DNA of 32,570 bases from Macrostomum lignano (GCA_002269645.1 NIVC01004536.1:1-32570), one strand, 5' to 3'; counted from the first letter of the stretch, positions 7,611-32,570 are shown. Program-made: numbers and translations. Notes: generated by a model not told the origin, from the sequence alone.

Positions 7611-7787
<177 letters not shown>

Positions 7788-11348: not shown

Positions 11349-11359
11349 ATTTGATCGAT

Positions 11360-12029: not shown

Positions 12030-13358
12030 ATGGCTGTCGAAAGCATGAAGCTACTTGCAATATTGCTTCTGTTCTGTTCGATCCTCGCAACGGAATGCAT
12101 CGCCAAGCGGAGAGACTATCAAGCCGAGCTGTTCAAATACTTGAAGAACAACATTACTGACTACAGTCCGAAACTGCGACCTACGCTCGACCCAGACCAG
12201 GAGGTGGAAGTACACGTCATCGCCTCGCCAAGAATGATTGTATCCGTGGACAGCGCCAAGCAGAGCATGACAATAGCTGGCATGTTTTTTGCCAGCTGGT
12301 ACGAGGAGCGACTGGTCTGGGACCCCCAGCTGTTCGGAAATGTCACAATGATGGACTGGGACAGCAACCAGCTCTGGCTCCCGGTCATAATCGTCTACAA
12401 CGGCATGGGAGACAATCAACTACTCAGTCCTCAGTTTCCGCCGTACATCACTTCCGTGCAGTCCAATTTGTCTGTGGTATCGACAACCTGGAGACAGGAG
12501 TGGGAGTTCTCTTGCGAGTTTAATATGACCCGCTTCCCTCTGGACCGTCACATCTGCGACATGGAGCTGTTCATGAATGCCCGCGCATTGGACAAAATCG
12601 TCCCGAGAAAAGGCTTATTATTGGCAAACTCATCGTTTGAATACAACGAAGGCGCGGCTTTTGCTCGTAACAGCGAATGGCGGGTGCTGAACCTCAGCAC
12701 ATTCATACGGTACAACGACTTCAAAATGTTCGAAAATCTGCCGCCAGTGAAAATGCCGACCTTTGTGATGCGACTGGAGATCGAGCGAGTGTCCACTTAC
12801 TACATGCTCAACGTGGTGGCTCCCCTAATGCTGCTCACGCTGCTCCAGGTGCTCGTCTTCTTCGTGCCAGTCGAGTCTGGAGAGAAGCTGGGCTTCGGCA
12901 TCACCATCACGCTGAGCTACACGGTGTTCCTGCTGCTGCTGGACGGCCTGCTGCCCAAGTCGCAGTCGATGCCGGCCGTGGCGTCGTTCATCACGGCGGC
13001 CATGGTGCTGTCGACGTCGTCTCTGCTGCTGACGTCGGTGGCGATTCGGTTCCACTTCGCTGCGGAGTCTCAGCCGATGCCGTCGTGTCTCCGGGTCGTG
13101 TTCGTGAGCTGCCTGGGCCGCGTGATGCTGTGCGGTGAGAGGCGAGGCGGCAGCAGGACGGCACCGGAGGGAGACCTCGATGATTCTGCTGTGAACAAAC
13201 CGAGCCGTGACGATGTTAGGAACGGAGATACGTCCGGAGAGCCGAGGCGCTCGGAGTGGCAGGTTGCAGAGGTCGCCGTGGAGCGGCTGCTGATCCTCCT
13301 AGGCTGTCCGGTCACTTTGGCCATCACGTTTTGTTTCCTTATTTTTCCGTTTCTTTGA
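12030..13358 (+). CDS. Cys-loop ligand-gated ion channel subunit A1 (nAChR-like, non-alpha), intronless, intact 442 aa
   Basis: Signal peptide; LRP, WxExRLxW, WLPVIIVYNG; Cys-loop CEFNMTRFPLDRHIC (C-X13-C, 12513-12557); M1-M2 linker PVESGEK; M2 LGFGITITLSYTVFLLL; M3; WQVAEVAVERL plus M4; no vicinal Cys in loop C. Confidence 0.95.
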   Translation: MAVESMKLLAILLLFCSILATECIAKRRDYQAELFKYLKNNITDYSPKLRPTLDPDQEVEVHVIASPRMIVSVDSAKQSMTIAGMFFASWYEERLVWDPQLFGNVTMMDWDSNQLWLPVIIVYNGMGDNQLLSPQFPPYITSVQSNLSVVSTTWRQEWEFSCEFNMTRFPLDRHICDMELFMNARALDKIVPRKGLLLANSSFEYNEGAAFARNSEWRVLNLSTFIRYNDFKMFENLPPVKMPTFVMRLEIERVSTYYMLNVVAPLMLLTLLQVLVFFVPVESGEKLGFGITITLSYTVFLLLLDGLLPKSQSMPAVASFITAAMVLSTSSLLLTSVAIRFHFAAESQPMPSCLRVVFVSCLGRVMLCGERRGGSRTAPEGDLDDSAVNKPSRDDVRNGDTSGEPRRSEWQVAEVAVERLLILLGCPVTLAITFCFLIFPFL

Positions 13359-13488
13359 AAAAACATTCGGTGGCACCTTCACGGAGATGGGTTTTCTGAT
13401 GGGTTAAAAATTCTCGTGTCTGACGAGAGTTTCGATATCTAAGCACCAAATTAACTTTAAAGATGATACGAAAACATTTTAATAGTAT

Positions 13489-13494
13489 AATAAA
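13489..13494 (+). terminator. Candidate polyadenylation signal for A1 (paralog at 26657-26662)
   Basis: AATAAA ~130 nt after the stop, kept in both copies. Confidence 0.4.
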
Positions 13495-13831
13495 GTCGGT
13501 TACTAATATATAGTTGCACTGAGTGAGGTGAAGAGTAAGTATCACGCTTCGACGTCACTAGTAAATTTTTTGGCGAACTGAATGTATACATGTATGCGGA
13601 CACTGTACTAAAAAATTATAATTACTCTTTTCTACGTCAAGTTTTTCTTTGGTAAGACCCTCTTGGCACAGCGCAAAAAGCTTAAAAAGATCAGAATAAA
13701 CAACTTTTCTATGCATTGCCGCTATCCAATAAGATTCTTTTAAAGTTTTTGATTGAAGATTGTCAAAAAACGCATGCTGCTTCAGGTGTTATTTATAATA
13801 TAAAGTAGTACAATCATATAATGATAGATAA

Positions 13832-14106
13832 CACCTGCCCTAATGGGCAGATTTGCAACCGACAGCTCAGCCGCAGCTATTGCGTGTCGCATCTGAAGGC
13901 TGCGTACGGCTGTTCAGTCCGAGGACTGGGGGGGGGGTTCATACACACCCTCAATTACCCCCAGCTAATGCTGGTACAAATTTTACAGCTGGGTGAACCG
14001 AAGCGTGTCAGTGTCTTGCTCGAGGACACAAATTGTTCCAAGAGGGTCGAGAATCGAACCCCCGACCTTCAGTCGTGAGTCCGACGCTCTGAACCACTAG
14101 GCTGAG
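13832..14106 (-). mobile_element. tRNA-derived SINE (copy 1) with a CORE-like central segment
   Basis: Minus strand: A-box-like AGCCTAGTGGTT, B-box GGTTCGATTCTC, then TGTGTCCTCGAGCAAGACACT...CACCCAGCTGTAAAAT resembling CORE-type SINE domains; no 5' acceptor stem. Confidence 0.75.
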
Positions 14107-15054
14107 ATTTAACTACATCCAATCAATAAGATCCAGTTACAGATGACGCAAGTGCAGGAATAGGTTCCGTGGGAATCGTGGCTCAGTAATTGCAAGTCTG
14201 AAAACGGCGCAGTAATTATTTATGCGAAACATTTTTGAAGGGACTGCGTTTGCGGAAAACTCTATTCGAATGAGATCACGCATGGGTTTCATCATAATAT
14301 TCATACCTTGGTTCATCTCATATACATTGTGGAAAAATATTGGCAATATTCGCGTCGACGGCATATTGGTAATATTCTAAGTTACGCGTCCTAAAGCGCG
14401 TCTGCTGCCCCTTGAGGATCAAGGGAAAGACTGAGCACTACCGTGACTTATTGATATGTAATGTTTAAGGGTCTTTGACCTTAACTATGTATATAAGCTA
14501 GGACACAATGGATCAATGGTACAAGCTAAAATTAAATTGGGCATTAGTTATTATTATACGCTATCGTATCTCAGATGAATCACGTGTAAGTTCTTAGTTT
14601 GCGGCCGATTAGAAACTTATAGCTACATTTAGTCATTCTACATTAGATGTCCACACGCTCCTCGAGCGAGCTTTATCCAGAGGCAAAGATCAGCAGAGGA
14701 GCTGCGTAGAATCCGCAAATATCAGTCATACCTGGCAAAGTCAATTTAGAAAATGAATCGCAAATAATACTAATTTTCTGATGAGACGAAAGTCACACAA
14801 TGAGATATACCTGGCTCAGTGCTGCATCAGATTAATTACGGGATACTCAGTGACTGCAATTCACAGATGCTCGTAGCAACTAAATAGGCAGACTATGCAA
14901 ACTTCAGAATTTGATAGCCTACTGCAGTGTCAACATGTAAAACGCATTTACGCTTGTATAGCTCAAAGGCTCGGGTTCAATAGGATCTGGGGATTTTATT
15001 GTCCAAGCTTAGCACGCTGCTCATCATTGAGACGGCTAACTCAACTACATCCAC

Positions 15055-16353
15055 GTGCCACAGTTCAGCCTTACCCGCTTCTGTTTGGTCTTCAGCGCCA
15101 TCGCTAGTGTTCAGGTGGCTCAGGCTAGAGACTTTGAAGCGGAATTGCTCGATTACTTGAAGACTAACAACTCTCGGTATAGCCGTACGCTCAGGCCGAA
15201 ACTAGATCCACATCAGGAGGAGCTCGGTGCTTGTCTGCTGAAAATTCTGGACGTAGACAGCGCCAAGCAGAGCGTCACCATAGCCGCAACTGTCTACGCG
15301 ATGTGGTTTGATGAACGCCTCGTCTGGGACCCGACCCAGTTTGGGAACATCACAATATTGGAATGGGACAACCAGAAAATCTGGTTTCCTCCAATCGTTA
15401 TTCTGAATGGTCTCGGCGACAATCAGCTGCTGAAGCCGGAGTTTCCATCATTTTTGGCCTCGATGTCATCGAACAAGACATTGGTGTCGACTATTTGGCG
15501 ACCAGATTTCGAGTTCACCTGCCAATTAAGCATGTACCGATTTCCAATGGATCGACACGTATGCAGTTTTAGTTTGTATATGGAGGACCAGGCTCAGCTA
15601 TACAAAAGTATAGTTCCAAGCAAGAAATTTTTGTGGAATGCGGAGAATGAGCAAGATGTGGAGTTAAATGAACTCGGTGCGCATAAAAACAGCAGCGAGT
15701 GGCGACTGCTAAGTTTGAGTACTTCGGTAGAATATGGACTTGTCAACTTTTTTAAGAATTCACCACTGATGCTAATACCAGCCTACAATATGCAAATGGA
15801 AATCGAGCGAGTGTCCACTTACTACATGCTCAACGTGGTGACTCCACTACTGCTGCTCACGCTGCTCCAAGTGCTTGTCTTCTTCGTGCCAGTCGAGTCT
15901 GGAGAGAAGCTGGGCTTCGGCATCACCATCATGCTGAGCTACACGGTGTTCCTGCTGCTGCTGGACGGCCTGCTGCCCAAGTCGCAGTCGATGCCGGCCG
16001 TGGCGTCGTTCATCACGGCGGCCATGGTGCTGTCGACGTCTTCTCTGCTGCTGACGTCGGTGTCGATTCGGTTCCACTTTGCTGCGGAGTCTCAGCCGAT
16101 GCCGTCGTGTCTCCGGGTCGTGTTCGTGAGCTGCCTGGGCCGCGTGATGCTGTGCGGTGAGCGGCGAGGCGGCAGCAGGACGGCGCCGGAGGGAGACGCC
16201 GATGACTCCGTGGTGAGCAAGGCGAGCGACGTCGGTGAAAGGCGCTCGGAGTGGCAGGTCGCAGCGGTCGCCGTGGAGCGGCTGATGATTTTCTTGGGCT
16301 GTCCTGCCGCAGTGGCCATTGTGGTTGCATTTGTCATTGTTCCATCCTGTTAA
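15055..16353 (+). CDS. Cys-loop channel subunit B1, intronless, open frame but GTG in place of ATG and a net 3-codon deletion in the N-terminal domain (possible pseudogene)
   Basis: Cys-loop CQLSMYRFPMDRHVC, PVESGEK, 4 TM; B2 has ATG at the same position; in-frame TAA at 15037-15039 excludes an upstream ATG. Confidence 0.85.
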   Translation: MPQFSLTRFCLVFSAIASVQVAQARDFEAELLDYLKTNNSRYSRTLRPKLDPHQEELGACLLKILDVDSAKQSVTIAATVYAMWFDERLVWDPTQFGNITILEWDNQKIWFPPIVILNGLGDNQLLKPEFPSFLASMSSNKTLVSTIWRPDFEFTCQLSMYRFPMDRHVCSFSLYMEDQAQLYKSIVPSKKFLWNAENEQDVELNELGAHKNSSEWRLLSLSTSVEYGLVNFFKNSPLMLIPAYNMQMEIERVSTYYMLNVVTPLLLLTLLQVLVFFVPVESGEKLGFGITIMLSYTVFLLLLDGLLPKSQSMPAVASFITAAMVLSTSSLLLTSVSIRFHFAAESQPMPSCLRVVFVSCLGRVMLCGERRGGSRTAPEGDADDSVVSKASDVGERRSEWQVAAVAVERLMIFLGCPAAVAIVVAFVIVPSC

Positions 16354-16901
16354 TTTTACTCGGCTAGACAAAAAATCGAAGCACAGTGATAGAGCGCTCT
16401 GTAGTAATATGAACTTATTAAACGTAATTTAAAAAAGCAGTCTCTTTTGTCTAATAGTTATTCTCTTTTACGTTCTCTAAGAAATGCCTCGCTGCTGAAG
16501 CCTTGGGGTCCAAAATTAAAGGTCACATTTGCTTAAACTATTTACACTAATGGGCAATGCTTAAAATACAAAATCCAACTTTAAAATCGAAGTGGTGTCA
16601 ATCGTTCTAAATACACAAATTTTATTCTTTTTGTGAATCTTTGTGGACTAATTTCTTTCTTAACCTTTTCTGCAACAAAGGGCATGATACTCCAAAACTG
16701 AGTCTATTTTGTACCTTATGTATGGAAAAGCTTTCACACAGAACTTACGGATTCAGAACGGTGAGTTGTATACAACTGTCACAACTTGAGACATCGCAAA
16801 ATCTGAAGCGATCGCTGAGTTGACTTCTGCAACTTTAACTTTTCGACTGCACCTTCGACTGCACCCGCATACTGCCGTCCAGGGCCATGAAAGGCACAGA
16901 G

Positions 16902-17280
16902 TGAGGACCAAGGGTTTATTAGGCTGAGGACCATGTGTTCATTGGGCTGAAGACCATGGGTTCATTGGGCTGAGGACCACGTGTTCATTGGGCTGAAGAC
17001 CAAGGGTTCATAGGGCTGAAGACTATGGGTTCATTGGGCTGAAGACCATGGGTACATTGGGCTGAGGACCACGTGTTCATTGGGCTGAGGACCATGGGTA
17101 CATTGGGCTGAGGACCACGTGTTCATTGGGCTGAGGACCATGGGTACATTGGGCTGAGGACCACGTGTTCATTGGGCTGAGGACCATGGGTACATTGGGC
17201 TGAGGACCACGTGTTCATTGGGCTGAAGACCAAGGGTTCACTGGTTTGAGGACCATGACTTCATGAGAACTGAGGACCAA
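16902..17280. repeat. 23-bp minisatellite, alternating GGGCTGAGGACCATGGGTACATT / GGGCTGAGGACCACGTGTTCATT (46-bp dimer)
   Basis: Strict alternation over ~17036-17220. Confidence 0.95.
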
Positions 17281-18009
17281 TAATGTGGTAGCGTGTGGCG
17301 TGTGTCTGGGGTGTTTGCATGGTGCTAGTTTGGTTTGGGTGTGTTATCGAATTATCGATTGTTCGTCCGAAGCTTCTAACGTTTTCGGCTTTGATAAATC
17401 TAAAGACAAAATATGTCAATAAATAAACTTTATCTGACATTTTCCAATATGCGAAATTTCCTCCACTCAATTGGCAGTGAAATTTGATAGCGAAGCTGCT
17501 ATTCTAGTATGATGCTTCGAATTTGGACGAAGCAATTGCTTCTCTTTCGACACCTAGATTTCGCCTCGAATAGTAAATTAATTTCACAAAAATATCAAAG
17601 CAGTCACGAACTATAGAGTAAACACCTGAGCCATTTTTACACAGACATGTATAGATGCATGGACACCTGAGGTATAGGCCGGTGGGATATTTTCGAATCT
17701 CTTTTAGGGTTATTATTGTCATCTGGATCGGTATCTGCCAGTCAAGGTCAACTGATTATAGGCTTTTAGCCTGTTAGTCAGTTCTGCAAAGCCTGTTAGA
17801 CAGTCTGTAGAGATCTCTAAAACATAGTATAAGCAGACTACTAGAAGTGGAAAGATAAAATATTTAAAAGACAAATTTTACATGCTTGGGTTCATACTCA
17901 ATTTTTAATAGTAATCACGAAAACAGTAAATGTCTATTCCACTATGCGAAAAACCGGTTCTCAACATCTAATTTTAGAACTTCCAAATATGGTAAATGTT
18001 GACCTGAAT

Positions 18010-19790
18010 GCTCTTTGCCGCCTCTCCTTTGATATCAATTACCGGAGGAGGGGCACAGAGGAAGGCATTCATGCCTTCAAAAGGAGTACAGGGTGGAGCG
18101 CCCATAGTCATGCGTCAGGCTCTGCCCTGGATTTTGTAGAGATTACCGAAATTCCAAAATTGCCGAAAGTGGGCTAGATGACCGCTAGCCCACACGAGGC
18201 TGGCGTAACAGATTGAGGTGCGCATAATGGCAGTGTAAATCCACCACAGTTTTCTGGGGGTGAGCCCTAGGTGGTTCCTACGGCGCGCCTGATCTGAGCC
18301 AGGACAGCCAGGGCTTTTTTGGCTTTGGTTTGGATGTGCGGAGTCCAGTTAAGCCTGTGGTCCAGAGTGAGGCCCAGGCCGCGGACGTGCTTCTCCATGG
18401 AAATATCCTTTCCATAGAGGGCGAGGGGCTTAATGGTCCAGAGCAGTTTGTTGGTAAACATGACCGCTGTGGTTTTCGACTCTGAGAGTCTAAGGCCACA
18501 TTGGTTTGCCCAACGCTCCGCTCGTCCCAGAAAGCCCTGCAGAAGATCTCTGAGGTATCAAACGAGGGACCCTCGCATATGGTGGTCACATTATAGGCAT
18601 AGCCCACCTTGAGAATGGTGTCATGGAGATCACTGCAAAGCAACTCATCCATGCGTCCTTTCTGGACAGGCGCCGTTAGAGAGCTGCTGTTCAGGTGGAC
18701 CACGACAGTGCGGTTCCGGATCATGAACATGATCCACCGGACAAGGGGAGGGTGCGTGGCCCTGGAGTCCAGGGCTCTGCAAAAGGCCTCGAAGATGACA
18801 TTGTCAAAGGCCCCCTCAATCTCCAGGAAAAGCGAGAGGGCAAAGCCGCTGCCAAGAACGGCCCTCTTCAGGAAGTCAACGATGACATGGAGGGCACTCT
18901 CAGTGGACCTGCCCGCGCGGAAGGCGTGCTGGTTCTGCGAGAGTGGGAAGCGCTTTAGCTCGATTGAAAGTAAGCGCCAAAGCACCAGTCTTTCGAGGAG
19001 CTTAAGGCAGAAGGAGGTAAGGCTGATAGGCCTGAAGGCCTTCACCTATTCGTAGTCGCAATATCCAGGCTTGGGGATAAAGACCACCCGGGCCTCTTTC
19101 CACGCAACTGGTACATAGCCCAGCTCCACACAAGCTCGGAGGAGACGACAGAGCAGGTCCAGGAAGCGGTGGTTTTTCACTGCCTCGTGCAAGAACGCTT
19201 AGTAGATGCCATCGGGCCCAGGCGCCTTGAACGGGTTGAAGGACCTTGTCGCTCTAGCAATGCGGTCTTTGGTGATCATAGACTTTGCTTGGCCTTGCCC
19301 TCCCACGGTGTGGTCAGGCGGGCCCTGCTGAGTCGGAGATTTAGGGAAGAAACTGTTGAGCATGAGCTCTAGAGTCTCTTCAGAGCTCTCTGTGACCGAG
19401 CCATCAGGTCTCTTCACAACAGAGAGTTTAGAAAAACGGTCGTTCGTGAGTGCCTTTACCACGTGGGCTACGGGGCGAGAGCCCTCAAGCCCTTCGCAAT
19501 ATTGGCGTCACTTGGCCGCCTTGGCCCTTCTGACTTGGCCCTTAAACTCGTGGATAGCACGGGTATAGGCCTCTCTATCAGATGGGTCTTTGGTTTTGAA
19601 CGCTCGTCTTTGGAGGGTCCTGGCTCGGCGCCGAAGGCTCTGGGTTTCACCAGGGAGCAGATTTCTTGCCTTTGAAGGCCTTAAGAGGGCAGGCTGCCTC
19701 ATAGGCAGTGGTGATCGCCCCGTCCAGGGGGGAGGCGTGATCATCCACAACCCGGCAGTCAGAGAGGTCACTGGGGACTGCTAGATCGGA
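18010..19790 (-). mobile_element. Degenerate non-LTR retrotransposon ORF2 relic (LOA/R1-like reverse transcriptase)
   Basis: FNPFKAPGPDGIY, WKEARVVFIPKPG, FRPISLTSFCLKLLERL, QHAFRAGRSTESALH, LFLEIEGAFDNV, YADD decayed to YAYN, KAKKALAVLAQIRRAVG, LWWIYTAIMR, TPFEGMNAFL; stops and frameshifts; clade call from motif style only. Confidence 0.92.
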
Positions 19791-19822
19791 ACCCAACCAT
19801 TCGATGGATGGAGTTGCCCTAG

Positions 19823-19962
19823 CTCCAGAGGCTTATTCTCTGGCGGCTGCTTTCATGCGAGCTGACAGCAATGCCCCTCAGCAATAATCAGCACGCCTTC
19901 CGTACCGAGAGAACGACTGACAGCGCCCTGCATGCGATAGTCGAGAAGATTGAACGGGCGGT
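19823..19962 (+). mobile_element. LOA/R1-like LINE relic, 5' piece (interrupted by a DNA transposon)
   Basis: LQRLILWRLLSCELTAMPLSNNQHAFRTERTTDSALHAIVEKIERAV; continues in frame at 22802. Confidence 0.88.
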
Positions 19963-21215: not shown

Positions 21216-21601
21216 TGTTTGGGAGCCTGCTGTTTGGGAGGGGACCGCTTGCTGTTTGGGAGGGGACCGCTTGCTGTTTGGGAGGGGACCGCTTGCTGTT
21301 TGGGAGGGGACCGCTTGCTGTTTGGGAGGGAACCGCTTGCTGTTTGGGAGGGGACCGCTTGCTGTTTGGGAGCCTGCTGTTTGGGAGCCTGCTGTTTGGG
21401 AGGGGACCGCTTGCTGTTTGGGAGCCTGCTGTTTGGGAGGGGACCGCTTGCTGTTTGGGAGCTTGCTGTTTGGGACCCTGCTGTTTGGGAGGGGACCGCT
21501 TGCTGTTTGGGAGCTTGCTGTTTGGGACCCTGCTGTTTGGGAGGGGACCGCTTGCTGTTTGGGAGCTTGCTGTTTGGGAGGGGACCGCTTGCTGTTTGGG
21601 A
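21216..21601. repeat. Compound minisatellite of 22-bp (TGTTTGGGAGGGGACCGCTTGC) and 15-bp (TGTTTGGGAGCCTGC) units inside the DNA transposon
   Basis: Seen directly. Confidence 0.95.
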
Positions 21602-21749
21602 ACTTAGAAAGAATTAGAAATTAAAGAATACGTAAAATACGCATTTAGAGAGATTTAGAGTTATATAGCGACAGGTACAGGGAGGCAGATAAACATGTTC
21701 CAGGTCCTCTCTAACCCTGTGTGCAACCCACCCAAACCTACATTTACAG

Positions 21750-21930: not shown

Positions 21931-22011
21931 GATGTCGAGGAGTAACTGTTTATTTCTTTTCACCACAAAAACATTAATTTTCTGGATACGCACCAGAATA
22001 TCCTATGTATT

Positions 22012-22370
22012 AAAATTCAGATAGAGATAATTAGGATTCAGGTAAGAGATAATTAGGATTTAGGTAAGAGATAATTAGGATTTAGGTAATAGATTAGGAT
22101 TCAGATAGAGAGAATTCAGGTAAGAAATTAGGATTCAGGTAAGAGTAAGGTTAGAGATTAGGATTCAGGTAAGAGATAATTAGGATTTAGGTAATAGATT
22201 AGGATTCAGATAAGAGATTAGAATTCAGGTAAGAGATTAGAATTCAGGTAAGAGATTAGGATTCAGGTAAGAGATAATTGGGGTTCAGGAGATAAGAATT
22301 AGAATTTAGATAAGAGGTTATTAGGATTTAGGTATTAGATCAATAGAATTCGGGTATTTGATAATTAGGA
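22012..22370. repeat. Degenerate ~20-22-bp tandem repeat (TTAGGATTCAGGTAAGAGATAA) inside the DNA transposon
   Basis: Seen directly. Confidence 0.9.
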
Positions 22371-22801
22371 CTATTTCGGCCACTGCTGCCAAACCTGCTG
22401 CTCAACGACCCTGCCCCGTTCTGCTAATGTTGCGCTAAGTGATGTTATATATTTCATACTTTCTATTTTACCCGTAAACTATATGTAACTACGTAAACAG
22501 GAAATAAATGATAACTAAAATGCATTTTTCATTTCGCTCTTCAAAGTCTTCGTATACGTGATATAACTTTAACAAACTGAAACACTGCACGCAATGCAAC
22601 CTACTGAAAGTAGTGTGTAAATACTGGGGTCGAATAAAAGATTGCAAGTAGGAGTCATGAGGACCCCTACTGAACAGGGTCCGGTCTGCGTCTGAATCAG
22701 TCCTACATCAGCGTCTGGCGGACTCGATTTCAGTAGGACATAAGCACCCTACCCAGACGGCCCAAAACTGACGCCCGATGGACGGCTTTTTTTACACCGG
22801 G

Positions 22802-23836
22802 GTACTGGGTGACGGTTACGCCCTGGCTCTTTTTCTCGACATTGTTGGCGCCTTCGACAACGTTATCTTTGAAGCGTTTCAGAGGACCCTTCAAAACCAC
22901 AAAGCTCACGCTACCCTCATACGGTGGATCATGTACATGATCTCTAACCGTACGGTCACTGCCCAACTTCTCGGGCAAACTACCTCCGCCAGAGTCTGTA
23001 AGGGTGGACCCCAAGGCGGAGTCCTCAGCCCGACGCTCTGGAATCTGGTCATGGACGCTCTTCTGGGTGACTCCCGACCTGATCCCGTTTTCAAAGTCGG
23101 GTATGCTGACGACGTCACTGCCATTGTGGCAGGGCCGTCCCCCAGCACGCTCAGGGATCTGATGCAGAGCTTTATCCGCAAAGCAGAATCCTGGGCCAAT
23201 GACAACGATCTGGAACTCTCTGAGCCCAAAACCGTTGCCATTATGTTCACCAGCAGAATACGCTGAAACATACGACCTCTGCAGTTATAGGCAGAGATAT
23301 TGCCTTCGCGCACCAGACCAGATGTCTCGGGGTCATAATTGACCACCGGCTCAACTGGTCCTTTCACGTGAAAGCAAAAGCCAAGCGTGCCTCAACCATC
23401 CTGGCCCAGCTCCGACGAGCACTTGGCACCTCTTGGGGTCTATCCCCAAAGCGACTTTGGTGGATCTACAATTCCGTAGTTAGACCTGCCATTACGTACG
23501 CCTCGGTTGTCTGGGTTAGCGCTACCCAGGTCAAAAGTCATGCAGATTTGCTCAACGCAATCCAGGGCAGAGCGTGTAGGCTTATCTGCAACGCCACCAG
23601 GTCCACGCCCTTTGCCGGCATGGGGGCCTTCCTTAATCTACCGCCTCTCGACCTCTTCGTCAGGGGTGAGGCGGCTAGAACGACGCGGCGTTTACTTGAT
23701 GCCGGTGTCAAATTCCTTTGCATGAGGGCACCTGCTAAGCGGAACCTCGTCCCGCATAGCGACCTGTGCCTCAACATTCTTAACGAGTGTCAGGCCAATC
23801 GCGTCTTCACCGATGGCATTGCCTCAACGCTCAACA
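22802..23836 (+). mobile_element. LOA/R1-like LINE relic, 3' piece (RT domains 3-7 and thumb), 3'-truncated
   Basis: VLGDGYALALFLDIVGAFDNV, KGGPQGGVLSPTLWNLVMD, VGYADDV, KTVAIMFT, WGLSPKRLWWIYNSVVRPAITYASVVW, TPFAGMGAFLNLPPLDLFVRGEA; internal stops and frameshift. Confidence 0.93.
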
Positions 23837-23837
23837 T

Positions 23838-24510
23838 ATTGCTAAAAACTTTGCTTTCCTGACCCTCAACCGCAGTGGCTGACTCTGGACATATTCGTCA
23901 CAGCTGGCTGGTCCCTGCCATCCTGCGATTCTGCCAGAAAGTCGGATTTTAGCCATAAGCGATAGTGTATTCAGTACACCCCTGTACGCCAATTAGCACT
24001 GCGCCTTAGTGCAGCCTTTTCAAGCCTCCAAATTTCATCAGCACGTCGATCACACGCGGCTGCATCAGCTCTGACTTCTTTAGTCACTGGCCTTCATCCA
24101 GGCGGAGCTTCTGAACCTTCAACAGGTGGCACCAGGTGAGTTTGAGAAGTTGCACAACAAAAAGTTAGCCCGTGCTCTTGAATTTCGTGTGCCTGCGTTG
24201 ATCCGTTCAAGCGCATTAAAAAATTGTCAGAGGGGGGGTAAATTCCCCCCTTGGTAGTTCTACTGATAATAGTAGCAAGTAGAGTGTAGTCTCATTAAAT
24301 TTTAATTCAGTTTTAGCTAAGCAACGACCAAACAATTTTCGCAGAGTACTTCAAGCGAGTTGCCTTGCTGTAAAGCTGTTTACAAACCAAATACTTCGTG
24401 GTGATCGGCAAGAAAAATCATCCAATAATCGACGAGATAAACAAAATCAACCTGCTGTCACTGAATAATCGAGGCAAGTCGTTGCTATGGATACAACAGA
24501 ATGCATCTTA
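23838..24510 (+). pseudogene. Relic of the 4TM gene: intron-3 acceptor plus the start of exon 4 (23857-23926) and decayed exon 5
   Basis: 67/70 identity to 10621-10690; exon-5 homolog has an altered acceptor and premature TAA at 24466-24468; exons 1-3 absent. Confidence 0.75.
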
Positions 24511-24946
24511 GGACAGGATGCATATTTAGAACAAATTACTTGAATCGACTTCAAATGTATCACTGCAAAGTAATTTTTTATCAAACTTTGGTAATCACGA
24601 TTTATAGTACCGCATAAACAGCCTACTTGAGTCAACAAATATACTCTGAAGCTTTTAAGCCGTTTATATGCGAGAGGAAACATATTTCGAGGTAAAATAA
24701 CAAAACAGAATAAATTACAATGTCATATAGTTAATTACACAACCGACTCTAAAAATGATAGAGCCAAGTCAATTAGACATGAAAGCTCGTTGAAAAATAC
24801 GCACGAAACTAATAAAAAGATTATTTACATTAATTAATTTCCAAGGCAAACGCACTGTCAGGACAAATCAACCTACGAGTAATCAAACACAGACGCAAAT
24901 GATCCATCAATTTATGAGTTAGCCAATAGCACTAAATGGGATGGCG

Positions 24947-24992
24947 ATTCAATTATTCAATTATTCAATTATTCAATTATTCAATTACTCAA
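24947..24992. repeat. (ATTCAATT)5 plus partial octamer repeat upstream of A2
   Basis: Single copy at the paralogous site 11808-11815. Confidence 0.9.
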
Positions 24993-25198
24993 ACGGGTAT
25001 TTGCTATGCCCCGATAGCAAATAACCACGATTGCTTCCCATGAACACTGCTTAGTTTGGACTATATGCAATCATAAAACGCATACCGGATGCAATATTGT
25101 CTGCTTCTATGCATCCATGTAGCATCCAGAGATTACATATACCGGCATCGAAGCAGTGTATTAGTCGAATTAGAGGCATCTAAGTCGAATCTTTCGCG

Positions 25199-26526
25199 AT
25201 GGCTGTCGAAGGGATGAAGTTGCTTGCAATATTGCTTCTGTTCTGTTCGATCCTGGCAAAGGAATGCCTCGCCAAGCGGAGAGACTATCAAGCCGAGCTG
25301 TTCAAATACTTGAAGAACAACATTACTGACTACAGTCCGAAACTGCGACCTACGCTCGACCCAGACCAGGAGGTAGAAGTACACGTCATCGCCTCACCAG
25401 GAATGATTGTATCCGTGGACAGTGCCAAGCAGAGCATGACAATAGCTGGTATGTTTTTTGCCAGCTGGTACGAGGAGCGACTGGTCTGGGACCCCCGGCT
25501 TTTCGGAAATGTCACCGCGATGGACTGGGACGGCAACCAGCTCTGGTTCCCGGTCATATTTGTCTACAACGGCATGGGAGACAATCAACTACTCAGTCCT
25601 CAGTTTCCGCCGTACATCACTTCCGTGCAGTCCAATTTGTCTGTGGTATCGACAACCTGGAGACAGGAGTGGGAGTTCTCTTGCGAGTTTAATATGACCC
25701 GCTTCCCTCTGGACCGTCACATCTGCGACATGGAGCTGTTCATGAATTCCCGCGAATCGGACAAAATCGTCCTAAGAAAAGGCTTATTATTGGCAAACTC
25801 ATCCTTTGAATACAACGAAGGCGTGGCTTTTGCTCGTAACAGCGAATGGCGGGTGCTGAACCTCAGCACATTCATACGGTACAACGACTTCAAAATGTTC
25901 AAAAATCTGCCGCCAGTGAAAATGCCGAACTTCGTGATGCGACTGGAGATTGAGCGAGTGTCCACTTACTACATGCTCAACGTGGTGACTCCCCTAATGC
26001 TGCTCACGCTGCTCCAGGTGCTCGTCTTCTTCGTGCCCGTCGAGTCTGGAGAGAAGCTGGGCTTCGGCATCACCATCATGCTGAGCTACACGGTGTTCCT
26101 GCTGCTGCTGGACGGCCTGCTGCCCAAGTCGCAGTCGATGCCGGCCGTGGCGTCGTTCATCACGGCGGCCATGGTGCTGTCGACGTCGTCTCTGCTGCTG
26201 ACGTCGGTGTCGATTCGGTTCCACTTCGCTGCGGAGTCTCAGCCGATGCCGTCGTGTCTCCGGGTCGTGTTCGTGAGCTGCCTGGGCCGCGTGATGCTGT
26301 GCGGTGAGCGGCGAGGCGGCAGCAGGACGGCACCGGAGGGAGACCTCGATGATTCTGCTGTGAACAAACCGAGCCGTGACGATGTGAGGACCGGAGAGAC
26401 GTCCGGAGAGCCGAGGCGCTCGGAGTGGCAGGTGCAGAGGTCGCCGTGGAGCGGCTGCTGATCCTCCTAGGCTGTCCGGTCACTTTGGCCATCACGTTTT
26501 GTTTCCTTATTTTTCCGTTTCTTTGA
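25199..26526 (+). pseudogene. Cys-loop channel subunit A2 (paralog of A1) with a 1-nt deletion at ~26433 before M4; pseudogene or consensus error
   Basis: 1328 nt vs 1329 in A1; GGTTGC in A1 is GGTGC here; otherwise an intact frame. Confidence 0.8.
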
Positions 26527-26997
26527 AAAAACATTCGGTGGCACCTTCACGGAGATGGGTTTTCTGATGGGTTAAAAATTCTCGTGTCTGACGAGAGTTT
26601 CGATATCTAAGCACCAAATTAACTTTGAAGATGATACGAAAACATTTTAATAGTATAATAAAGTCGGTTACTAATATATAGTTGCACTGAGTGAGGTGAA
26701 GAGTAAGTATCACGCTTCGACGTCACTAGTAAATTTTTTGGCGAACTGAATGTATACATGTATACGGACACTGTACTAAAAAATTATGATTGCTCTTTTC
26801 TAGGCCAAGTTTTCATTGGTAAGACCCTCTTGGCACAGCGCAAAAAGCTTAAAAAGATCAGAATAAACAACTTTTCTATGCATTGCCGCTATCCAATAAG
26901 ATTCTTTTAAGTTTTCGATTAAAGCTTGTCAAAAAACGCATGCTTGCTTCAGGTGTTATTTATAATATAAAGTAGTACAATCATATAATGATAGATA

Positions 26998-27270
26998 AAC
27001 CTGCCCTAATGGGCAGATTTGCAACCGACAGCTCAGCCGCAGCTATTGCGTGTCGCATCTGAAGGCTGCGTACGGCTGTTCAGTCCGAGGACTGGGGGGG
27101 GGGGTTCATACACACCCTCAATTACCCCCAGCTAATGCTGGCACATTTTACAGCTGGGTGAACTGAAGCGTGTCAGTGTCTTGCTCGAGGACACAAATTG
27201 TTCCAAGAGGGTCGAGAATCGAACCCCAGACCTTTCAGTCGTGAGTCCGACGCTCTGACCACTAGGCTAG
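26998..27270 (-). mobile_element. tRNA-derived SINE (copy 2, duplicated with the block)
   Basis: Near-identical to 13832-14106 at the paralogous position. Confidence 0.75.
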
Positions 27271-28177
27271 ATTTAACTACATCCAATAATAAGACAGTTC
27301 AGATGACGCAAGTGCAGGAAGGTTCCGTGGGAATCGGCCAGAATTGCAAGTCTGAAAACGGCGCAGTATTATTTGATGCAAACATTTTGAAGGGACTGCG
27401 TGCGGAAAACTTATTATAAATCACGCATGGGTTTCATCATATATTCTTTACCTTTTCATCCATATACATGTGAAAAATACTTGCTTGCTGTTATTTATTT
27501 TAAGTTACGCGTCCTAAAGCGCGTCTGCTGCCCCTTGAGGATCAAGGGAAAGACTGAGCACTACCGTGACTTATTGATATGTAATGTTTAAGGGTCTTTG
27601 ACCTTAACTATGTATATAAGCTAGGACACAATGGATCAATGGTACAAGCTAAAATTAAATTGGGCATTAGTTATTATTATACGCTATCGTATCTCAGATG
27701 AATCACATGTAAGTTCTTAGTTTGCGGCCGATTAGAAACTTATAGCTGCATTTAGTCATTCTACATTAGATGTCCACACGCTCCTCGAGCGAGCTTTATC
27801 CAGAGGCAAATATCAGCAGAGGAGCTGCGTAGAATCCGCAAATATCAGTCATACCTGGCAAAGTCAATTTAGAAAATGAATCGCAAATAATACTAATTTT
27901 CTGATGAGACGAAAGTCACACAATGAGATATACCTGGCTCAGTGCTGCATCAGATTAATTACGAGATACTCAGTGACTGCAATTCACAGATGCTCGTAGC
28001 AACTAAATAGGCAGACTATGCAAACTTCAGAATTTGATAGCCTACTGCAGTGTCAACATGTAAAACGCATTTACGCTTGTATAGCTTAAAGGCTCGGGTT
28101 CAACAGGATCTGGGGATTTTATTGTCCAAGCTTAGCACGCTGCTCATCATTGAGACGGCTAACTCAACTACATCCAC

Positions 28178-29477
28178 ATGCCACAGTTCAGCCTTACCCG
28201 CTTCTGTTTGGTCTTCAGCGCCATCGCTAGTGTTCAGGCGGCTCAGGCTAGAGACTTTGAAGCGGAATTGCTCGATTACTTGAAGACTAACAACTCTCGG
28301 CATAGCCGTGCGCTCAGGCCGAAACTAGATCCACATCAGGTGATTGAAGTGTCGCTCGGTGCTTGTCTGCTGAAAATTCTGGACGTAGACAGCGCCAAGC
28401 AGAGGTCACCATAGCCGCAACGGTCTACGCGATGTGGTTTGATGAACGCTTCGTCTGGGACCCGACCCAGTTTGGGAACATCACAATATTGGAATGGGAC
28501 AACCAGAAAATCTGGTTTCCTCCAATCGTTATTCTGAATGGTCTCGGCGACAATCAGCTGCTGAAGCCGGAGTTTCCATCATTTTTGGCCTCGATGTCAT
28601 CGAACAAGACATTGGTGTCGACTATTTGGCGACCAGATTTCGAGTTCACCTGCCAATTAAGCATGTACCGATTTCCAATGGATCGACACGTATGCAATTT
28701 TAGTTTGTATATGGAGGACCAGGCTCAGCTATACAAAAGTATCGTTCCAAGCAAGAAATTTTTGTGGAATGCGGAGAATGAGCAAGATGTGGAGTTAAAT
28801 GAAATTGGTGCGTATAAAAACAGCAGCGAGTGGCGACTGCTAAGTTTGAGTACTTCGGTAGAATATGGACTTGTCAACTTTTTTAAGAATTCACCACTGA
28901 TGCTAATACCAGCCTACAATATGCAAATGGAAATCGAGCGAGTGTCCACTTACTACATGCTACTACTGCACTACTGCTGCTCACGCTGCTCCAGGTGCTC
29001 GTCTTCTTCGTGCCAGTCGAGTCTGGAGAGAAGCTTGGCTTCGGCATCACCATCATGCTGAGCTACACGGTGTTCCTGCTGCTGCTGGACGGCCTGCTGC
29101 CCAAGTCGCAGTCGATGCCGGCCGTGGCGTCGTTCATCACGGCGGCCATGGTGCTGTCGACGTCGTCTCTGCTGCTGACGTCGGTAGCGATTCGGTTCCA
29201 CTTCGCTGCGGAGTCTCAGCCGATGCCGTTGTGTCTCCGGGTCGTGTTCGTGAGCTGCCTGGGCCGCGTGATGCTGTGCGGTGAGCGGCGAGGCGGCAGC
29301 AGGACGGCGCCGGAGGGAGACGCCGATGACTCCGTGGTGAGCAAGGCGAGCGACGTCGGTGAAAGGCGCTCGGAGTGGCAGGTCGCAGCGGTCGCCGTGG
29401 AGCGGCTGATGATTTTCTTGGGCTGTCCTGCCGCAGTGGCCATTGTGGTTGCATTTGTCATTGTTCTATCCTGTTAA
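28178..29477 (+). pseudogene. Cys-loop channel subunit B2 (paralog of B1) with two frameshifts
   Basis: ATG at 28178; missing C at 28404/28405; 14 nt of B1 replaced by 7 nt at 28962-28968 (net -7) at the start of M1. Confidence 0.88.
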
Positions 29478-30034
29478 TTTTAACTCGGCTAGACAAAAAT
29501 CGAAGCACAGTGATAGAGCGCTCTGTAGTAATATGAACTTATTAAACGTAATTTAAAAAAGCAGTCTCTCTTGTCTAATAGTTATTCTCTTTTACGTTCT
29601 CTAAGAAATGCCTCGCTGCTGAAGCCTTGGGGTCCAAAATTAAAGGTCACATTTGCTTAAACTATTTACACTAATGGGCAATGCTTAAAATACAAAATCC
29701 AACTTTAAAATCGACGTGGTCGCATTCGCTCTGAATGCACCAATTTTATCCTTTTTGTGAATCTTTGTGGTCTAATTTATTTTTTAACCTCTTTTGCGAC
29801 TAAGGGCTCGGTACTCCAAAACTGAGGCTGTTTTTACTTTATGTACCGGTATGGAAAAGCTTGAGTTTACACGGCACCTACGGATTCAGAACGGCGAGTT
29901 GGAGACTGTCACCAATTGGGACATCCCAAATCTGAAGCGATCACTGATTTGACTTCTGCAACTTTAACTTTCAGAAACTTTTAGGCTGCACCTTCGTCCC
30001 GCATACTGCCGTCCGGGCTATAAAAGGCACACAG

Positions 30035-30297
30035 TGAGGACCAAGGGTTTATTGGGCTGAGGACCATGGGTTCATGAGAATGAGATCCATGGGTTCAATG
30101 AGCTGAGGACCATGATTTCATGAGACTGAGGACCATGAATTCATGAGACTGAGGACCATGATTTCATGAGACCGAGGACTATGAATTCATGAGACTGAGG
30201 ACCATGATTTCATGAGACTGAGGACCATGATTTCATGAGACTGAAAACAATGGGTTCATTGGGCAGAAGAACAAGGCTTCGTTGTGCTGAAGACCAA
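30035..30297. repeat. 23-bp minisatellite (CATGAGACTGAGGACCATGA[T/A]TT) at the site paralogous to 16902-17280
   Basis: Seen directly; a different monomer variant from copy 1. Confidence 0.93.
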
Positions 30298-31577
30298 TGA
30301 TGTCGTAGCGTGGGCATGTGTCGCGTTTCTGGGGCGTTTGGTGCTGGTATGAGGTTTCGTTTGATTGGTATTTAGTTGGCGTGGGGGCTGCTCTCTTATT
30401 ACTTGCAGCTTGCTTCACTTGCATCTCGCCACGCCAGTTGGGTGAGAGTCTATTTATAACCTTTCTATCGCTTTCTATCGCTAACAGAGACAGTGACAGT
30501 TCATTAGGTTAGAGACCATGATTTTATTTGTGCTGAGGATCATGGCTTCATGAGACTGGGGATCATGGTGTGGTGGCGTGTGTCGCTGTTTGCATATACA
30601 AAATGTCCTCTACTCGTTGACAGCGAACCTCGACAGCAAAACTGCTATTCCAGTGTGCCGCTTAGAATTTCGGACGAAACAATTGCATCTAGGTCGTATT
30701 TTGGCACCCCGAATAGCTTTTTGCTTTTCTTCCAGCTTTCCAATCTAAAGCAATAATAAATCCACAGTCACAGGCTCAGAGCGATAGCTAATGCATCCGC
30801 AAACACTGGATGAAAGCAAATTATTGTCATAAAAATCTCGAAGTAGTCACTGACCTAGAGTAAATACCTGAGCTATGTTTACACAGATATGTAAACACGA
30901 ACACTTGAGTTCAGACCAATGGAATATCTTTGAATCATTTTTTAGGATAAATATAGCTATCTGGATTGATATCCGCCAGTCAAAGCCAATGGATTATATG
31001 GCTCTGGTTCCAGTGCTGTCCGTTCAAACAAAACCCATCACAGGCAGGCTGGTCGCAAAGAAATTTGTTCTACACAGTGACCTGGCGCTGTTTGCCCTGT
31101 GCATTAGCCTAATTGCATTTCGGAGGAGTGTATTTACAAATAGGACTATAGAAACGTATGATTATTAGTGTCCAAATACCAAGTTTTCGGACAAAGCAAA
31201 GTTTGTCACGGTATAGATTGGAGTGCTTTCAGTTCCAGGCGTTCAATAAAGTCTTTTTCAGGAAAATCGAGTGTTTAGTTTATTTCTAATCCAGTTATTA
31301 ATGTTTGTGATTAAGTGAATAATTAATCTGTCAAATATCTTGTGTGTCCTCTAACGAATGTTTATCAATCTGCCGTGTTACTCACATTGCCAGTAGTTTA
31401 TCCAATTACCGCATTAGCAGTTTCATGCTGCAGCATAAATCTGATTAGCTTCAGCCAATAACTACTCACCAGGGAAGTGAAAAAGCAGCCGAACTCTAAA
31501 AAAGATGAGCCTGCTCACATAAAACCTGCGATTCACCAACCGGAGTTCACTGCTTACTGGTCTCAAATAAGAGCGAA

Positions 31578-32570
31578 ATGCTGTGTAAAATATTCATTAA
31601 AGCTCTTGCTCTTGTCGCCTTGCTGACCACTGAATATCAGTTAGCAGCAGGTGCTGAAGACTACGAGGCCGAACTGTTGCACTACTTAAGGCACAACATC
31701 ACCGGCTACAGCCCGACTCTCCGACCATTGCTGAATTCAAAGCAGACTGTCTTTGTGTCAGCAGACATTATAATTGGTCAGATAATCTTGGTTGACAGCT
31801 CAAAGCAGAGTGTAACAATTTCCGCAATTATCTCAGCCAGCTGGAGCAACGAGCGGTTAATCTGGGACCCGGCCAAGTTCGGCAACATCACCGTGATGGA
31901 CTGGGACAGCAGTCAGCTCTGGTTCCCTGTTGTGGTCGTCTACAACGGCCTTGGAGACAACCAGCTGCTGAGTCCTCAGCTTCCGACATTCATCACGTCA
32001 GTGTCGCCCAACAGATCTACAGTGTCCACCGGCTGGATCGGGCAGTGGGAGTTCTCCTGCAAGTTTAACATAAATCGGTTTCCGTTCGATCGGCACTCCT
32101 GCGAGATGGAGCTTTGCGAATGACCAGAGCCGCGGTTGCCCAGCACTGTTATAAAGAAAGGGTCATTTCTACTGATGCGCCATCGGAGCCAACGGAGTAC
32201 AACAATAAGGTGCCTATAGGACAATGGCGAATGGAACTTGGTCAACTTGACCACTTATATAAAGAAAATACCCTATGAGGTGCTTAAGGGAGCATCAAAG
32301 GTTAATCTGTCTACGTTGGCTTTGCACATGGAGCTCGAGCGAGTGCCCACTTACTACATTTTGAGCGTAATGACCCCCTGCTGCTGCTCACGCTGCTCCA
32401 GGTGCTCGTCTTCTTCGTTCCCGTTGAGTCTGGAGAGAAGCTGGGCTTCGGCATCACAATCATGCTGAGCTACACGGTGTTTCTGCTGCTGCTGGACGGC
32501 CTGCTGCCCAAGTCGCAGTCGATGCCGGCCGTGGCGTCGTTCATCACGGCGGCCATGGTGCTGTCGACGT
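31578..32570 (+). CDS. Cys-loop channel subunit C, intronless, 3'-truncated by the window; apparent stops/frameshifts at 32110-32380 are probably consensus errors
   Basis: Signal peptide, DYEAELLHYL, LRP, WSNERLIWDP, WFPVVVVYNG, Cys-loop CKFNINRFPFDRHSC, then PVESGEKLGFGITIMLSYTVFLLLLDG after restoring single bases. Confidence 0.85.

Follow-up and report, generated by a model that had tools for sequence, protein, structure and literature searches.

A partly decayed tandem array of intronless non-alpha nicotinic-receptor-type subunits, probably from a flatworm-restricted family

In this study, five Cys-loop receptor units were found head to tail on the plus strand of a 32,570-nt window (the whole stretch of DNA that was analysed), with matches to Pfam Neur_chan_LBD and/or Neur_chan_memb at E-values of 1e-15 to 1e-28. 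The array is best explained as a partly decayed tandem cluster of a flatworm-restricted family of intronless, non-alpha nicotinic-receptor-type Cys-loop subunits, a reading that we regard as probable. The first-pass annotation had described five single-exon genes, head to tail, with a signal peptide and a C-x13-C loop. The five intronless units and their order were recovered, as were hydrophobic N-termini and the C-x13-C loop in all five (CEFNMTRFPLDRHIC, CQLSMYRFPMDRHVC and CKFNINRFPFDRHSC), but base-by-base mapping left A1 as the only intact gene, with a single unbroken frame from signal peptide through M4, while B1, A2, B2 and C each carried disabling lesions (Table 1).

Table 1. Coordinates of the receptor units, conversion tracts and duplicated blocks in the window
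Feature	Position	Strand	Description
A1	12030..13358	+	single-exon gene, intact; 442-aa non-alpha nAChR-like subunit with signal peptide, ECD, Cys-loop C162-C176, M1-M4
B1	15055..16353	+	open 432-codon frame; GTG start, 9 nt missing in frame from beta1; probably a young pseudogene
A2	25199..26526	+	A1 duplicate, 3% substitutions; 1-nt deletion ~26432, truncated before M4
B2	28178..29477	+	B1 duplicate, ATG kept; 1-nt deletion ~28404, 7-nt deletion ~28961; pseudogene
C	31578..32570	+	third paralog type, pseudogene; 3 indels; ends within M3 at window end
Gene-conversion tract, A1	12780..13170	+	M1 to start of ICD; sliding identity, dS
Gene-conversion tract, B1 partner	15800..16190	+	self-match, dS, sliding identity
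Segmental duplication block 1 (A1-B1 and flanks)	11093..17163	+	blastn self-match 92.4% over 6.1 kb
Segmental duplication block 2 (A2-B2 and flanks)	24267..30296	+	blastn self-match to block 1; substitution rates

The units belong to the Cys-loop pentameric ligand-gated ion channel superfamily and are nAChR-type subunits. PF02931 and PF02932 scored above the cut-off in A1, B1 and A2 (7e-25 for the ligand-binding and 4e-18 for the transmembrane domain of A1). The AF2 model of A1 (pLDDT 86.5, pTM 0.78) showed the predicted fold of a canonical nAChR subunit, a beta-sandwich with M1 (255-277), M2 (285-307), M3 (316-342) and M4 (409-438), and its best Foldseek matches were human nAChRs, with TM-scores of 0.7-0.85 to the alpha4beta2, muscle, alpha3beta4 and alpha7 receptors. 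Sequence search of the PDB gave nAChR alpha, beta and delta subunits as best matches and ranked alpha1 (120 bits) above 5-HT3A (87 bits). Using an ECD profile, the best scores were obtained with heteromer-type vertebrate subunits (alpha2, alpha3, alpha1, beta3, alpha6, beta2 and beta4), alpha2 reaching 93 bits ahead of beta3, beta2 and beta4, followed by CRT1 (66), 5-HT3A (61) and Alpo4 (60). The earlier designation as nAChR-like cation channels agrees with these sequence and fold matches, the subunits being non-alpha with a cation-type filter. Membership of the cephalopod CR clade was considered and rejected, CRT1 (8eis, 9e6b) scoring under alpha2, alpha3, alpha1, beta3, beta2, beta4, DEG-3 and delta; CRT1 was found neither among the best 60 full-length sequence matches nor among the best 50 fold matches.

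The elements of channel architecture were retained. C162, P170, D172 and C176, which form the Cys-loop with its FPxD motif, were invariant in a 68-sequence alignment, and the loop was present in all three paralog types. The M1-M2 linker reads VESGEK, with Glu at -4', Gly at -2', Glu at -1' and Lys at 0', and Leu 9' is kept, as the first reading of ESGEK as a cation-type filter had stated. All window copies share the filter and M2 string VESGEKLGFGITI(T/M)LSYTVFLLLLDG, which is without Pro-Ala-Arg and has the outer acidic ring. By these filter criteria the family is predicted to belong to the cation-selective branch (nAChR/5-HT3 type). A1 keeps the Cys-loop FPxD, the pre-M1 Arg, Glu -4', Glu -1', Leu 9' and Asp 19', and would form part of a pentameric cation channel.

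The binding pocket was different. A1 retains the loop D Trp and the loop A Tyr; its loop B has no Trp, its loop C has neither Cys-Cys nor the Tyr residues, and its WxPD motif has no Asp. The lack of the loop C vicinal Cys-Cys/Tyr motif had been claimed before; the quoted strings were present, although the one quoted for C came from a piece out of frame with its N-terminus, and Cys-Cys occurred in no window or M. lignano family member, while 18 of 64 outside relatives carry it. The reported loss of the loop B Trp was also confirmed, the loop B column holding neither Trp nor any other aromatic residue (N in A, E in B, S or N in M. lignano) against Trp in 49 of the 64; HMMER alignment to alpha1 placed R or A at this position. 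Loop A reads WLPV in A1, WFPV in A2 and C and WFPP in B, again as first described, so that the WxPD position is V or P, compared with Asp in 45/64 relatives and Asp/Glu in 47/64. A, C and the M. lignano copies have the Tyr93 equivalent of loop A, where B has Leu. Conservation was lowest in pocket loops B, F and C (17-29% pairwise identity), and M2 was 94-97% identical between the window and M. lignano copies. The missing residues suggest that canonical cation-pi ACh binding would be precluded on the principal (+) face of A1, so that another ligand or an alpha-type partner would be required. Of these two, gating by a ligand other than ACh is slightly favoured.

Non-alpha subunits are defined by the lack of Cys-Cys, and muscle beta, gamma, delta and epsilon also lack the loop B Trp. 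Both features were missing together in 15/64 nearest relatives; their loss is common in divergent invertebrate subunits and typical of accessory non-alpha subunits. A possible but less probable explanation is that the units encode accessory or complementary subunits, which would bind no ligand on their own (+) face and join alpha-type flatworm nAChR subunits in ACh-gated heteromers, giving the (-) face or the fifth structural position. The preference of the ECD profile for heteromer-type vertebrate subunits fits such a role, as do the very strong constraint on pore and coupling elements and the loop D Trp (W90) in 7/8 family members without Cys-Cys, this Trp being a weak discriminator since it is found in 64/64 relatives. 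The adjoining cholinergic gene CHT1 points weakly in the same direction. Against it stands the loss of the WxPD Asp/Glu that most relatives carry, together with the distribution of the family.

This distribution was determined by exhaustive search of 1.84 billion (1.84e9) representative proteins. Only P0002, P0003 and P0020 exceeded 31% identity; outside the window the family was found in M. lignano alone, these close relatives being 45-48% identical, and all other proteins were at most 31% identical and were of mixed phyla and mixed names. P0003 is from M. lignano, as is P0001, whose cluster includes P0152, a protein bearing that species name; P0020 is near-identical to the third M. lignano ORF in locus L001, and for P0002 and P0020 the only identifiers are those of UniParc. 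Family members were not found in the parasitic flatworm and planarian protein sets of the searched collection. In a neighbour-joining tree of the 145 best matches, with nAChR, 5-HT3, ZAC and CR references limited to PDB score ranking, the window copies and four M. lignano proteins formed one clade in 200/200 bootstrap replicates, within which the window copies (171/200) and the M. lignano copies (178/200) grouped separately. Judged from sequence, the family is a small, flatworm-only clade of non-alpha, cation-type nAChR-like subunits. Nesting within conserved neuronal beta clades, which the first-pass annotation had named as an outcome that would speak against it, was not observed in this tree, and no orthology to a conserved beta-type clade was found. 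The lack of orthology to any conserved non-alpha clade, the absence from the flatworm sets searched and the maintenance of several divergent paralogs in M. lignano all argue against an accessory role.

The intronless state appears to be old. Locus L001 of M. lignano holds three intact intronless tandem copies and a fragment, and an M. lignano family gene, at 1305 nt, has exactly the length needed for 434 aa and a stop codon. The window and L001 copies each cluster apart, indicating lineage-specific duplications, while the intronless tandem state common to both arrays argues that introns were lost before their split. The earlier suggestion of an independent, retrocopy-founded expansion has to be modified accordingly: each array duplicated on its own, but from genes that had already lost their introns. 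The 3' flanks of the units held no trace of a poly(A) tail. The single exons, head-to-tail order and own-lineage paralog clusters are those of lophotrochozoan intronless tandem nAChR expansions. The neighbouring CHT1 gene, whose best matches were from Protopolystoma, Fasciolopsis and Heterobilharzia, has at least six exons, which makes the intronless units a real contrast. These CHT1 matches and the restriction of close relatives to M. lignano point to a flatworm host. Macrostomum genes have a mean of 3-5 introns (PMC10468722).

The array grew by an old A/B/C triplication and then by recent duplication of a 6-kb A-B block, C being an additional unit outside the block. The two blocks diverge by ~3%, with substitutions of 3.0% in the A CDS, 3.2% in the spacer and 2.1% in the B CDS; the equal coding and spacer rates (3.0% vs 3.2%) offer scant evidence that the recent copies are under constraint, and dN/dS was 0.39-0.53, calculated from only 27-40 changes. 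The ligand-binding domains of A, B and C were 40-49% identical, whereas their M1-M3 channel regions were 95-100% identical. The A1 tract showed 95-100% nucleotide identity to its B1 partner and to C from ~32400, with sharp steps in sliding identity at ~12780 and ~13170. Between A1 and B1, dS (NG86) fell from saturation in the ECD to 0.055 in M1-M3 and rose again to 0.26 in the ICD and 0.60 in MA-M4, while the M. lignano paralogs had M1-M3 dS of 0.85-1.2 (NG86) and were not homogenised. These data showed that a recent gene-conversion tract of ~400 bp homogenised the M1-M3 pore module among the paralogs. The ESGEK and M2 strings are identical across copies because of this recent conversion and not through independent conservation. 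Within a single exon, one domain has thus undergone concerted evolution beside the divergence of another.

The lesions were mapped individually. B1 has GTG at the position of the B2 ATG, with a stop four codons upstream and Met83 as the first usable in-frame ATG; its start could be rescued by a putative SL-donated AUG. The A2 deletion yields QRSPWSGC* instead of MA/M4. In C, a 1-nt deletion at ~32119 leads to TGA at 32121, followed by a second indel at ~32220 and a third, a 1-nt deletion in a C-run, at ~32375. That every lesion arose from assembly or consensus error, with five functional genes in the array, is very improbable. The A2 deletion (TT to T) and the third C indel do lie in short homopolymers, A2 past its frameshift is identical to A1 (dS 0 in MA-M4), the B1 start is one base away from ATG, and long reads underlie published Macrostomum assemblies (PMC10468722). 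However, the 7-nt deletion of B2 and its non-homopolymer 1-nt deletion at 28404 are atypical of consensus errors, C would need three separate corrections within 260 bp, and A1 (1329 nt) and six CHT1 exons needed none. A2 and B1, with one small lesion each and otherwise open, could reflect consensus errors or segregating null alleles. The B and C types are apparently dead or dying in this haplotype, a pattern of birth-and-death turnover and not of a maintained receptor repertoire; since all B-type and C-type copies are damaged, the locus looks unlike a selected receptor repertoire.

These lesions also bear on the proposal of the first-pass annotation that the array is an independent chemosensory repertoire, analogous to cephalopod chemotactile receptors and sensing environmental compounds, which we consider unlikely. 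Only one of five copies is intact, two of the three paralog types are represented here by damaged copies alone, and the family is small, with 3-4 genes seen in M. lignano, while octopus has 26 CRs. Nor is it close to CRT1 in sequence (66 bits vs 93 for alpha2). The gross CR syndrome is present, namely nAChR descent, intronless tandem genes, lost ACh-box residues and a kept cation pore (CR features: PMC11526382), variation is greatest in the pocket loops B, F and C, and lineage-specific duplication with pseudogenes is the birth-and-death pattern typical of chemoreceptors. However, hundreds of nAChR-like genes in molluscs show this syndrome too, and they are tied to development, immunity and stress, not to chemosensation (PMC6896357). 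Also improbable is an independently arisen flatworm-specific nAChR-derived family with a non-ACh ligand, in which gene conversion keeps the pore module uniform and the ligand-binding domains are free to diversify. An Arg conserved across the family beside the loop E Trp (WRxEFEF) would then suggest that the ligand is non-cationic. To our knowledge, nAChR-derived receptors for ligands other than ACh are established only for cephalopod CRs, with orphans such as Alpo4 as candidates.

Taken as a partly decayed non-alpha array, the locus alone is mostly pseudogenes, and its present value is as annotation and as a lead. Intronless tandem nAChR expansions in lophotrochozoans are already known, and the window is a further modest, mostly pseudogenised example. 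If functional, the family would add free-living flatworms to the molluscs, annelids and cephalopods in which duplicated nicotinic receptors have lost their introns and taken on new roles, and would offer a small tractable set of orphan channels (one intact gene here, three or four in M. lignano) in Macrostomum, a transgenic model genus.

Among known systems, the vertebrate accessory subunits beta3, beta1 and delta resemble the window family in lacking the loop C Cys-Cys and having a canonical cation pore, and the best PDB matches include beta3, beta2, beta4 and delta; the family differs in its lack of orthology, the lost WxPD Asp/Glu, its lineage restriction and its intronless tandem genes. 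The cephalopod receptors CRT1 and CRB1 (PDB 8EIS, 9E6B) are likewise nAChR-derived, intronless and clustered with canonical ACh residues lost, and have a non-selective cation pore (PMC11526382), but they form a different clade and most window copies are dead. Alpo4 of the annelid Alvinella pompejana (PDB 8BX5; PMC10338036) is also a lophotrochozoan, non-alpha, isolated and fast-evolving nAChR-like orphan without a Cys-Cys tip, which keeps the aromatic cage F103, W159, Y199, Y205 and W65 (PMC10338036), whereas the window family lost the loop B Trp and the loop C tyrosines. The mollusc and other lophotrochozoan arrays share with the window intronless, head-to-tail nAChR-superfamily genes whose paralogs cluster by species, high divergence from canonical subunits and many poorly expressed or, as in the window, pseudogenic copies (PMC6896357). 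Mollusc expansions comprise 99-217 genes, compared with 3-5 copies per locus in the flatworm family, and homogenisation of the pore module by gene conversion, seen in the window family, is undescribed in Jiao et al. 2019 (PMC6896357), who reported intronless nAChRs from molluscs alone and did not sample flatworms. The closest system is M. lignano PAA92206.1 (UniRef A0A267H1R5) and its neighbours on NIVC01000059.1. These copies are all intact and 0.8-1.5 kb apart, with M1-M3 unhomogenised and no CHT1 nearby, unlike the window; they fall in the window's clade (200/200), are 45-48% identical overall, are intronless and tandem without Cys-Cys, loop B Trp or WxPD Asp, and have nearly the window's M2 and filter (LESGEKLGFGITIMLSYTVFLLLLDG).

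The locus belongs to a small clade of nAChR-like genes, restricted to flatworms, that are intronless, tandemly arranged, non-alpha and of cation type; the clade evolves via segmental duplication, gene conversion and pseudogenisation and has one intact copy in the window. Five units with the Pfam domains Neur_chan_LBD and/or Neur_chan_memb were found on the + strand from 12030 to the window end, and every motif quoted in the first-pass annotation was recovered in them. The N-termini were hydrophobic, the Cys-loop was C-x13-C with FP(L/M/F)D, and loop A read WLPV, WFPV or WFPP instead of WxPD. Loop C had no vicinal Cys-Cys and the loop B column no Trp; the M1-M2 linker was VESGEK (Glu -4', Gly -2', Glu -1') and Leu 9' was present. 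Motif columns were compared in a 68-sequence alignment including the 64 nearest outside relatives, among which the WxPD Asp occurred in 45, the loop B Trp in 49 and the loop C Cys-Cys in 18; both Trp and Cys-Cys were missing from 15 of the 64, and all three features from nine. The motif loss in the window units is real, yet not unusual among divergent invertebrate subunits. The principal face of the family subunits has no cation-pi Trp, no loop C tyrosines and no loop C disulfide, and the loop D Trp is retained, as is the loop A Tyr except in B; the subunits are by definition non-alpha. A family-conserved W-R-x-E-F-E-F was observed at A1 residues 154-160 (window ~12489-12509) and equivalents. 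Its Arg comes right after the loop E Trp, at a position where Leu stands in beta2 and alpha7, and adjoins a gap of two residues in comparison with other nAChRs; the alignment there is uncertain, and the Arg, if pocket-facing, would make a quaternary-ammonium ligand less likely.

Three-frame translation and pairwise DNA alignment revealed that counting these units as five genes was an overcount, since A1 only is intact. The features of the window are listed in the table.

Features of the window, with position, strand and state
Feature	Position	Strand	Remarks
Minisatellite	863-2050		21/83-bp array
CHT1/SLC5A7	2566-6690	+	complete high-affinity choline transporter gene; at least 6 exons: ~2566-2730, 3128-3253, 4042-4203, 4538-4690, 5188-5520, 5902-6690
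Minisatellite	3386-4009		28/85-bp array; by position between CHT1 exons 3128-3253 and 4042-4203
(AGT)58	7612-7786
A1	12030-13358	+	442 aa, sole intact copy
B1	15055-16353	+	GTG where duplicate B2 has ATG
RVT_1 fragment (Pfam)	18278-19045	-	non-LTR retrotransposon; degraded, not full length
Two more arrays	21216-21601 and 22015-22370		in inter-block spacer
RVT_1 fragment (Pfam)	22778-23862	+	non-LTR retrotransposon; degraded, not full length
A2	25199-26526	+	1-nt deletion at ~26432
B2	28178-29477	+	1-nt deletion ~28404, 7-nt deletion ~28961
C	31578 onward	+	cut within M3 by window end

B2 and C are unambiguous pseudogenes. In C, a 1-nt deletion at ~32119 leads to TGA at 32121, and is followed by a second indel at ~32220 and a third lesion at ~32375, where one nt is missing from a C-run. 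The deletion in A2 puts QRSPWSGC and a stop in place of the end of MA (the helix before M4) and the whole of M4. B1 has a stop four codons upstream of its GTG, and its next in-frame Met at residue 83, and 9 nt are missing from its strand beta1. Both A2 and B1 are otherwise open frames with a single small disabling change apiece; either could be a very young pseudogene, a null allele or a consensus error. In M. lignano the spliced leader (SL) ends in ATG (PMC8629364), and in B1 the GTG leads, nine bases on, to CAG/TTC (window 15055-15066) with an in-frame AG at 15062-15063; since both hold, the start codon might come from trans-splicing, and an SL-donated AUG could in principle rescue B1 translation. 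The SL sequence itself was absent from the window, and scanning it for Rfam families and tRNAs gave no match. Long spurious ORFs arise from the dense minisatellites of the window.

Self-comparison of the window showed that a 6.1-kb block with A1 and B1 (11093-17163) recurs at 24267-30296 with 92.4% identity. Substitutions between the blocks amounted to 3.0% in A coding sequence, 3.2% in the A-B spacer and 2.1% in B coding sequence, and with coding and spacer levels this similar there is little to suggest constraint after the duplication; dN/dS was 0.39 for A1/A2 and 0.53 for B1/B2, from few changes. In loop B, A1 (12579-12608) reads NARALDKIVP and A2 (25748-25777) NSRESDKIVL, so that four of the ~21 replacements over 442 residues cluster within ten residues. 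An identical 23-bp minisatellite (TGAGGACCATGGGTTCATTGGGC) lies at the 3' edge of both blocks (16902-17279 and 30035-30296), and could plausibly have served as substrate when unequal crossing-over produced the duplication. The two blocks may instead be mis-assembled haplotypes, but the 7 kb between them, which match nothing else in the window except tandem repeats, carry non-LTR reverse-transcriptase fragments, and the blocks differ by structural indels.

The ligand-binding extracellular parts (ECDs) of the A, B and C types were 40-49% identical as protein, with saturated synonymous sites, and the types are old paralogs. Their M1-M3 regions had 95-100% nucleotide identity, and identity between A1 and B1 rose sharply at ~12780 and dropped at ~13170. 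The A1-B1 dS was 0.055 in M1-M3, 0.26 in the intracellular part (ICD) and 0.60 in MA-M4, and M. lignano paralogs gave 0.85-1.2 over the same M1-M3 region. Purifying selection alone was ruled out as the source of the high membrane-domain identity, because synonymous sites are identical as well, the tract takes in the normally variable ICD start, and dS among M. lignano paralogs is near 1 there. The M1-M3 homogeneity reflects a recent internal gene-conversion tract, which explains why the filter and M2 strings noted at first reading are identical in all copies.

HMMER, run exhaustively against 1.84 billion representative proteins, gave 7890 matches, only three of them above 31% identity: the relatives P0002 (48%), P0003 (TM fragment, 61%) and P0020 (ECD fragment, 36%). 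An ECD-profile search found no further relatives beyond P0020. By cluster look-ups, P0003 is from Macrostomum lignano and P0152, a member of the cluster of relative P0001, is M. lignano PAA92206.1; P0002 and P0020 have UniParc identifiers only. Exact-sequence look-ups of A1, P0001 and P0002 returned no contig, and a locus was obtained for P0152 only. At this M. lignano locus (L001, NIVC01000059.1), three intact intronless copies lie head to tail at 7863-14105, 0.8-1.5 kb apart, and only the middle one is called as a gene; a fragment with the TM part alone lies at 16369-16671. The third ORF of the locus is nearly identical to P0020. Such close spacing of the copies would be compatible with a trans-spliced operon. 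The L001 copies share the motif losses of the window copies, and their M2 is almost identical.

By neighbour joining of 145 sequences with 200 bootstraps, the family was monophyletic in 200/200, the window copies grouped in 171/200 and the M. lignano copies in 178/200, and ECD identity between window and M. lignano copies was 33-37%. Since window and L001 are both intronless and tandem, the tree and the ECD identities indicate that an intronless tandem family predates their split, and that the duplications are lineage-specific on each side. No orthology signal was found outside the family in the tree: the nearest outsiders were a mixture of Lingula 'beta-3-like', amphioxus 'alpha-9/10-like', fish and frog '5-HT3A-like', Mytilus, Elysia and chiton proteins. 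The 3' flanks had AATAAA/ATTAAA-like signals and no poly(A) remnant, a hallmark of the retrocopy origin proposed earlier. Macrostomum genes have 3-5 introns on average (PMC10468722), and the multi-exon CHT1 indicates that introns are normal in the host genome. CHT1 lies on the same strand as A1, 5.3 kb upstream, and best matched flatworm proteins of Protopolystoma, Fasciolopsis and Heterobilharzia (59-61% identity), so the host is a flatworm, one that the protein collection does not cover. Its position, a cholinergic marker beside nAChR-like genes, may be a coincidence; no CHT1 was found beside the L001 copies.

AlphaFold2 predicted A1 as a canonical subunit (pLDDT 86.5, pTM 0.78; input alignment without the M. 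lignano ORF translations), with disorder limited to the ICD and the region of loop F (190-207). In Foldseek the model matched chains of the human alpha4beta2, muscle, alpha3beta4 and alpha7 receptors (TM-scores 0.7-0.85). Pore and coupling elements were intact and extremely conserved across window and M. lignano members, with M2 pairwise identity of 94-97%, and conservation in the family was lowest in pocket loops B, F and C (17-29%). A1 would take part in a pentameric cation channel, and its own (+) face is predicted to be unable to bind ACh canonically. Of two competing readings, orphan, non-ACh gating of the A1 channel is quite possible and slightly favoured, though held tentatively.

Receptor type was compared by score ranking against PDB chains. 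A1 scored best with muscle alpha1 (120 bits), then alpha3, alpha4, alpha6, beta1, alpha7, delta and 5-HT3A (87 bits). The family ECD profile ranked alpha2 top (93 bits), followed by alpha3, alpha1, beta3, alpha6, beta2, beta4 and alpha4 (74-84 bits), DEG-3 and delta (70-71 bits), octopus CRT1 and ACR-23 (66 bits), alpha7, alpha9 and 5-HT3A (61-62 bits) and Alpo4 (60 bits). This ECD affinity to heteromer-type subunits speaks for an accessory or complementary subunit of ACh-gated heteromers, a role we consider possible but somewhat doubtful. A chemosensory role analogous to that of the cephalopod chemotactile receptors (CRs) is improbable: its sole basis is the syndrome shared with CRs, which hundreds of mollusc genes also show, other roles having been proposed for them (PMC6896357), the family has no clade affinity to CRT1, and the damage in all B and C copies speaks against a maintained repertoire at the locus.

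Literature searches found no description of the window family, and flatworms are absent from the surveys on nAChR expansions, CRs and Alpo4, the orphan receptor of Alvinella pompejana (PMC6896357, PMC11526382, PMC10338036). Lophotrochozoans are already known to have intronless tandem nAChR expansions (PMC6896357), and CRs (PMC11526382) and Alpo4 (PMC10338036) are known nAChR-derived orphan or sensory receptors. The family is, modestly, a further case of these established intronless tandem expansions, to which domain-limited gene conversion is a tidy extra.
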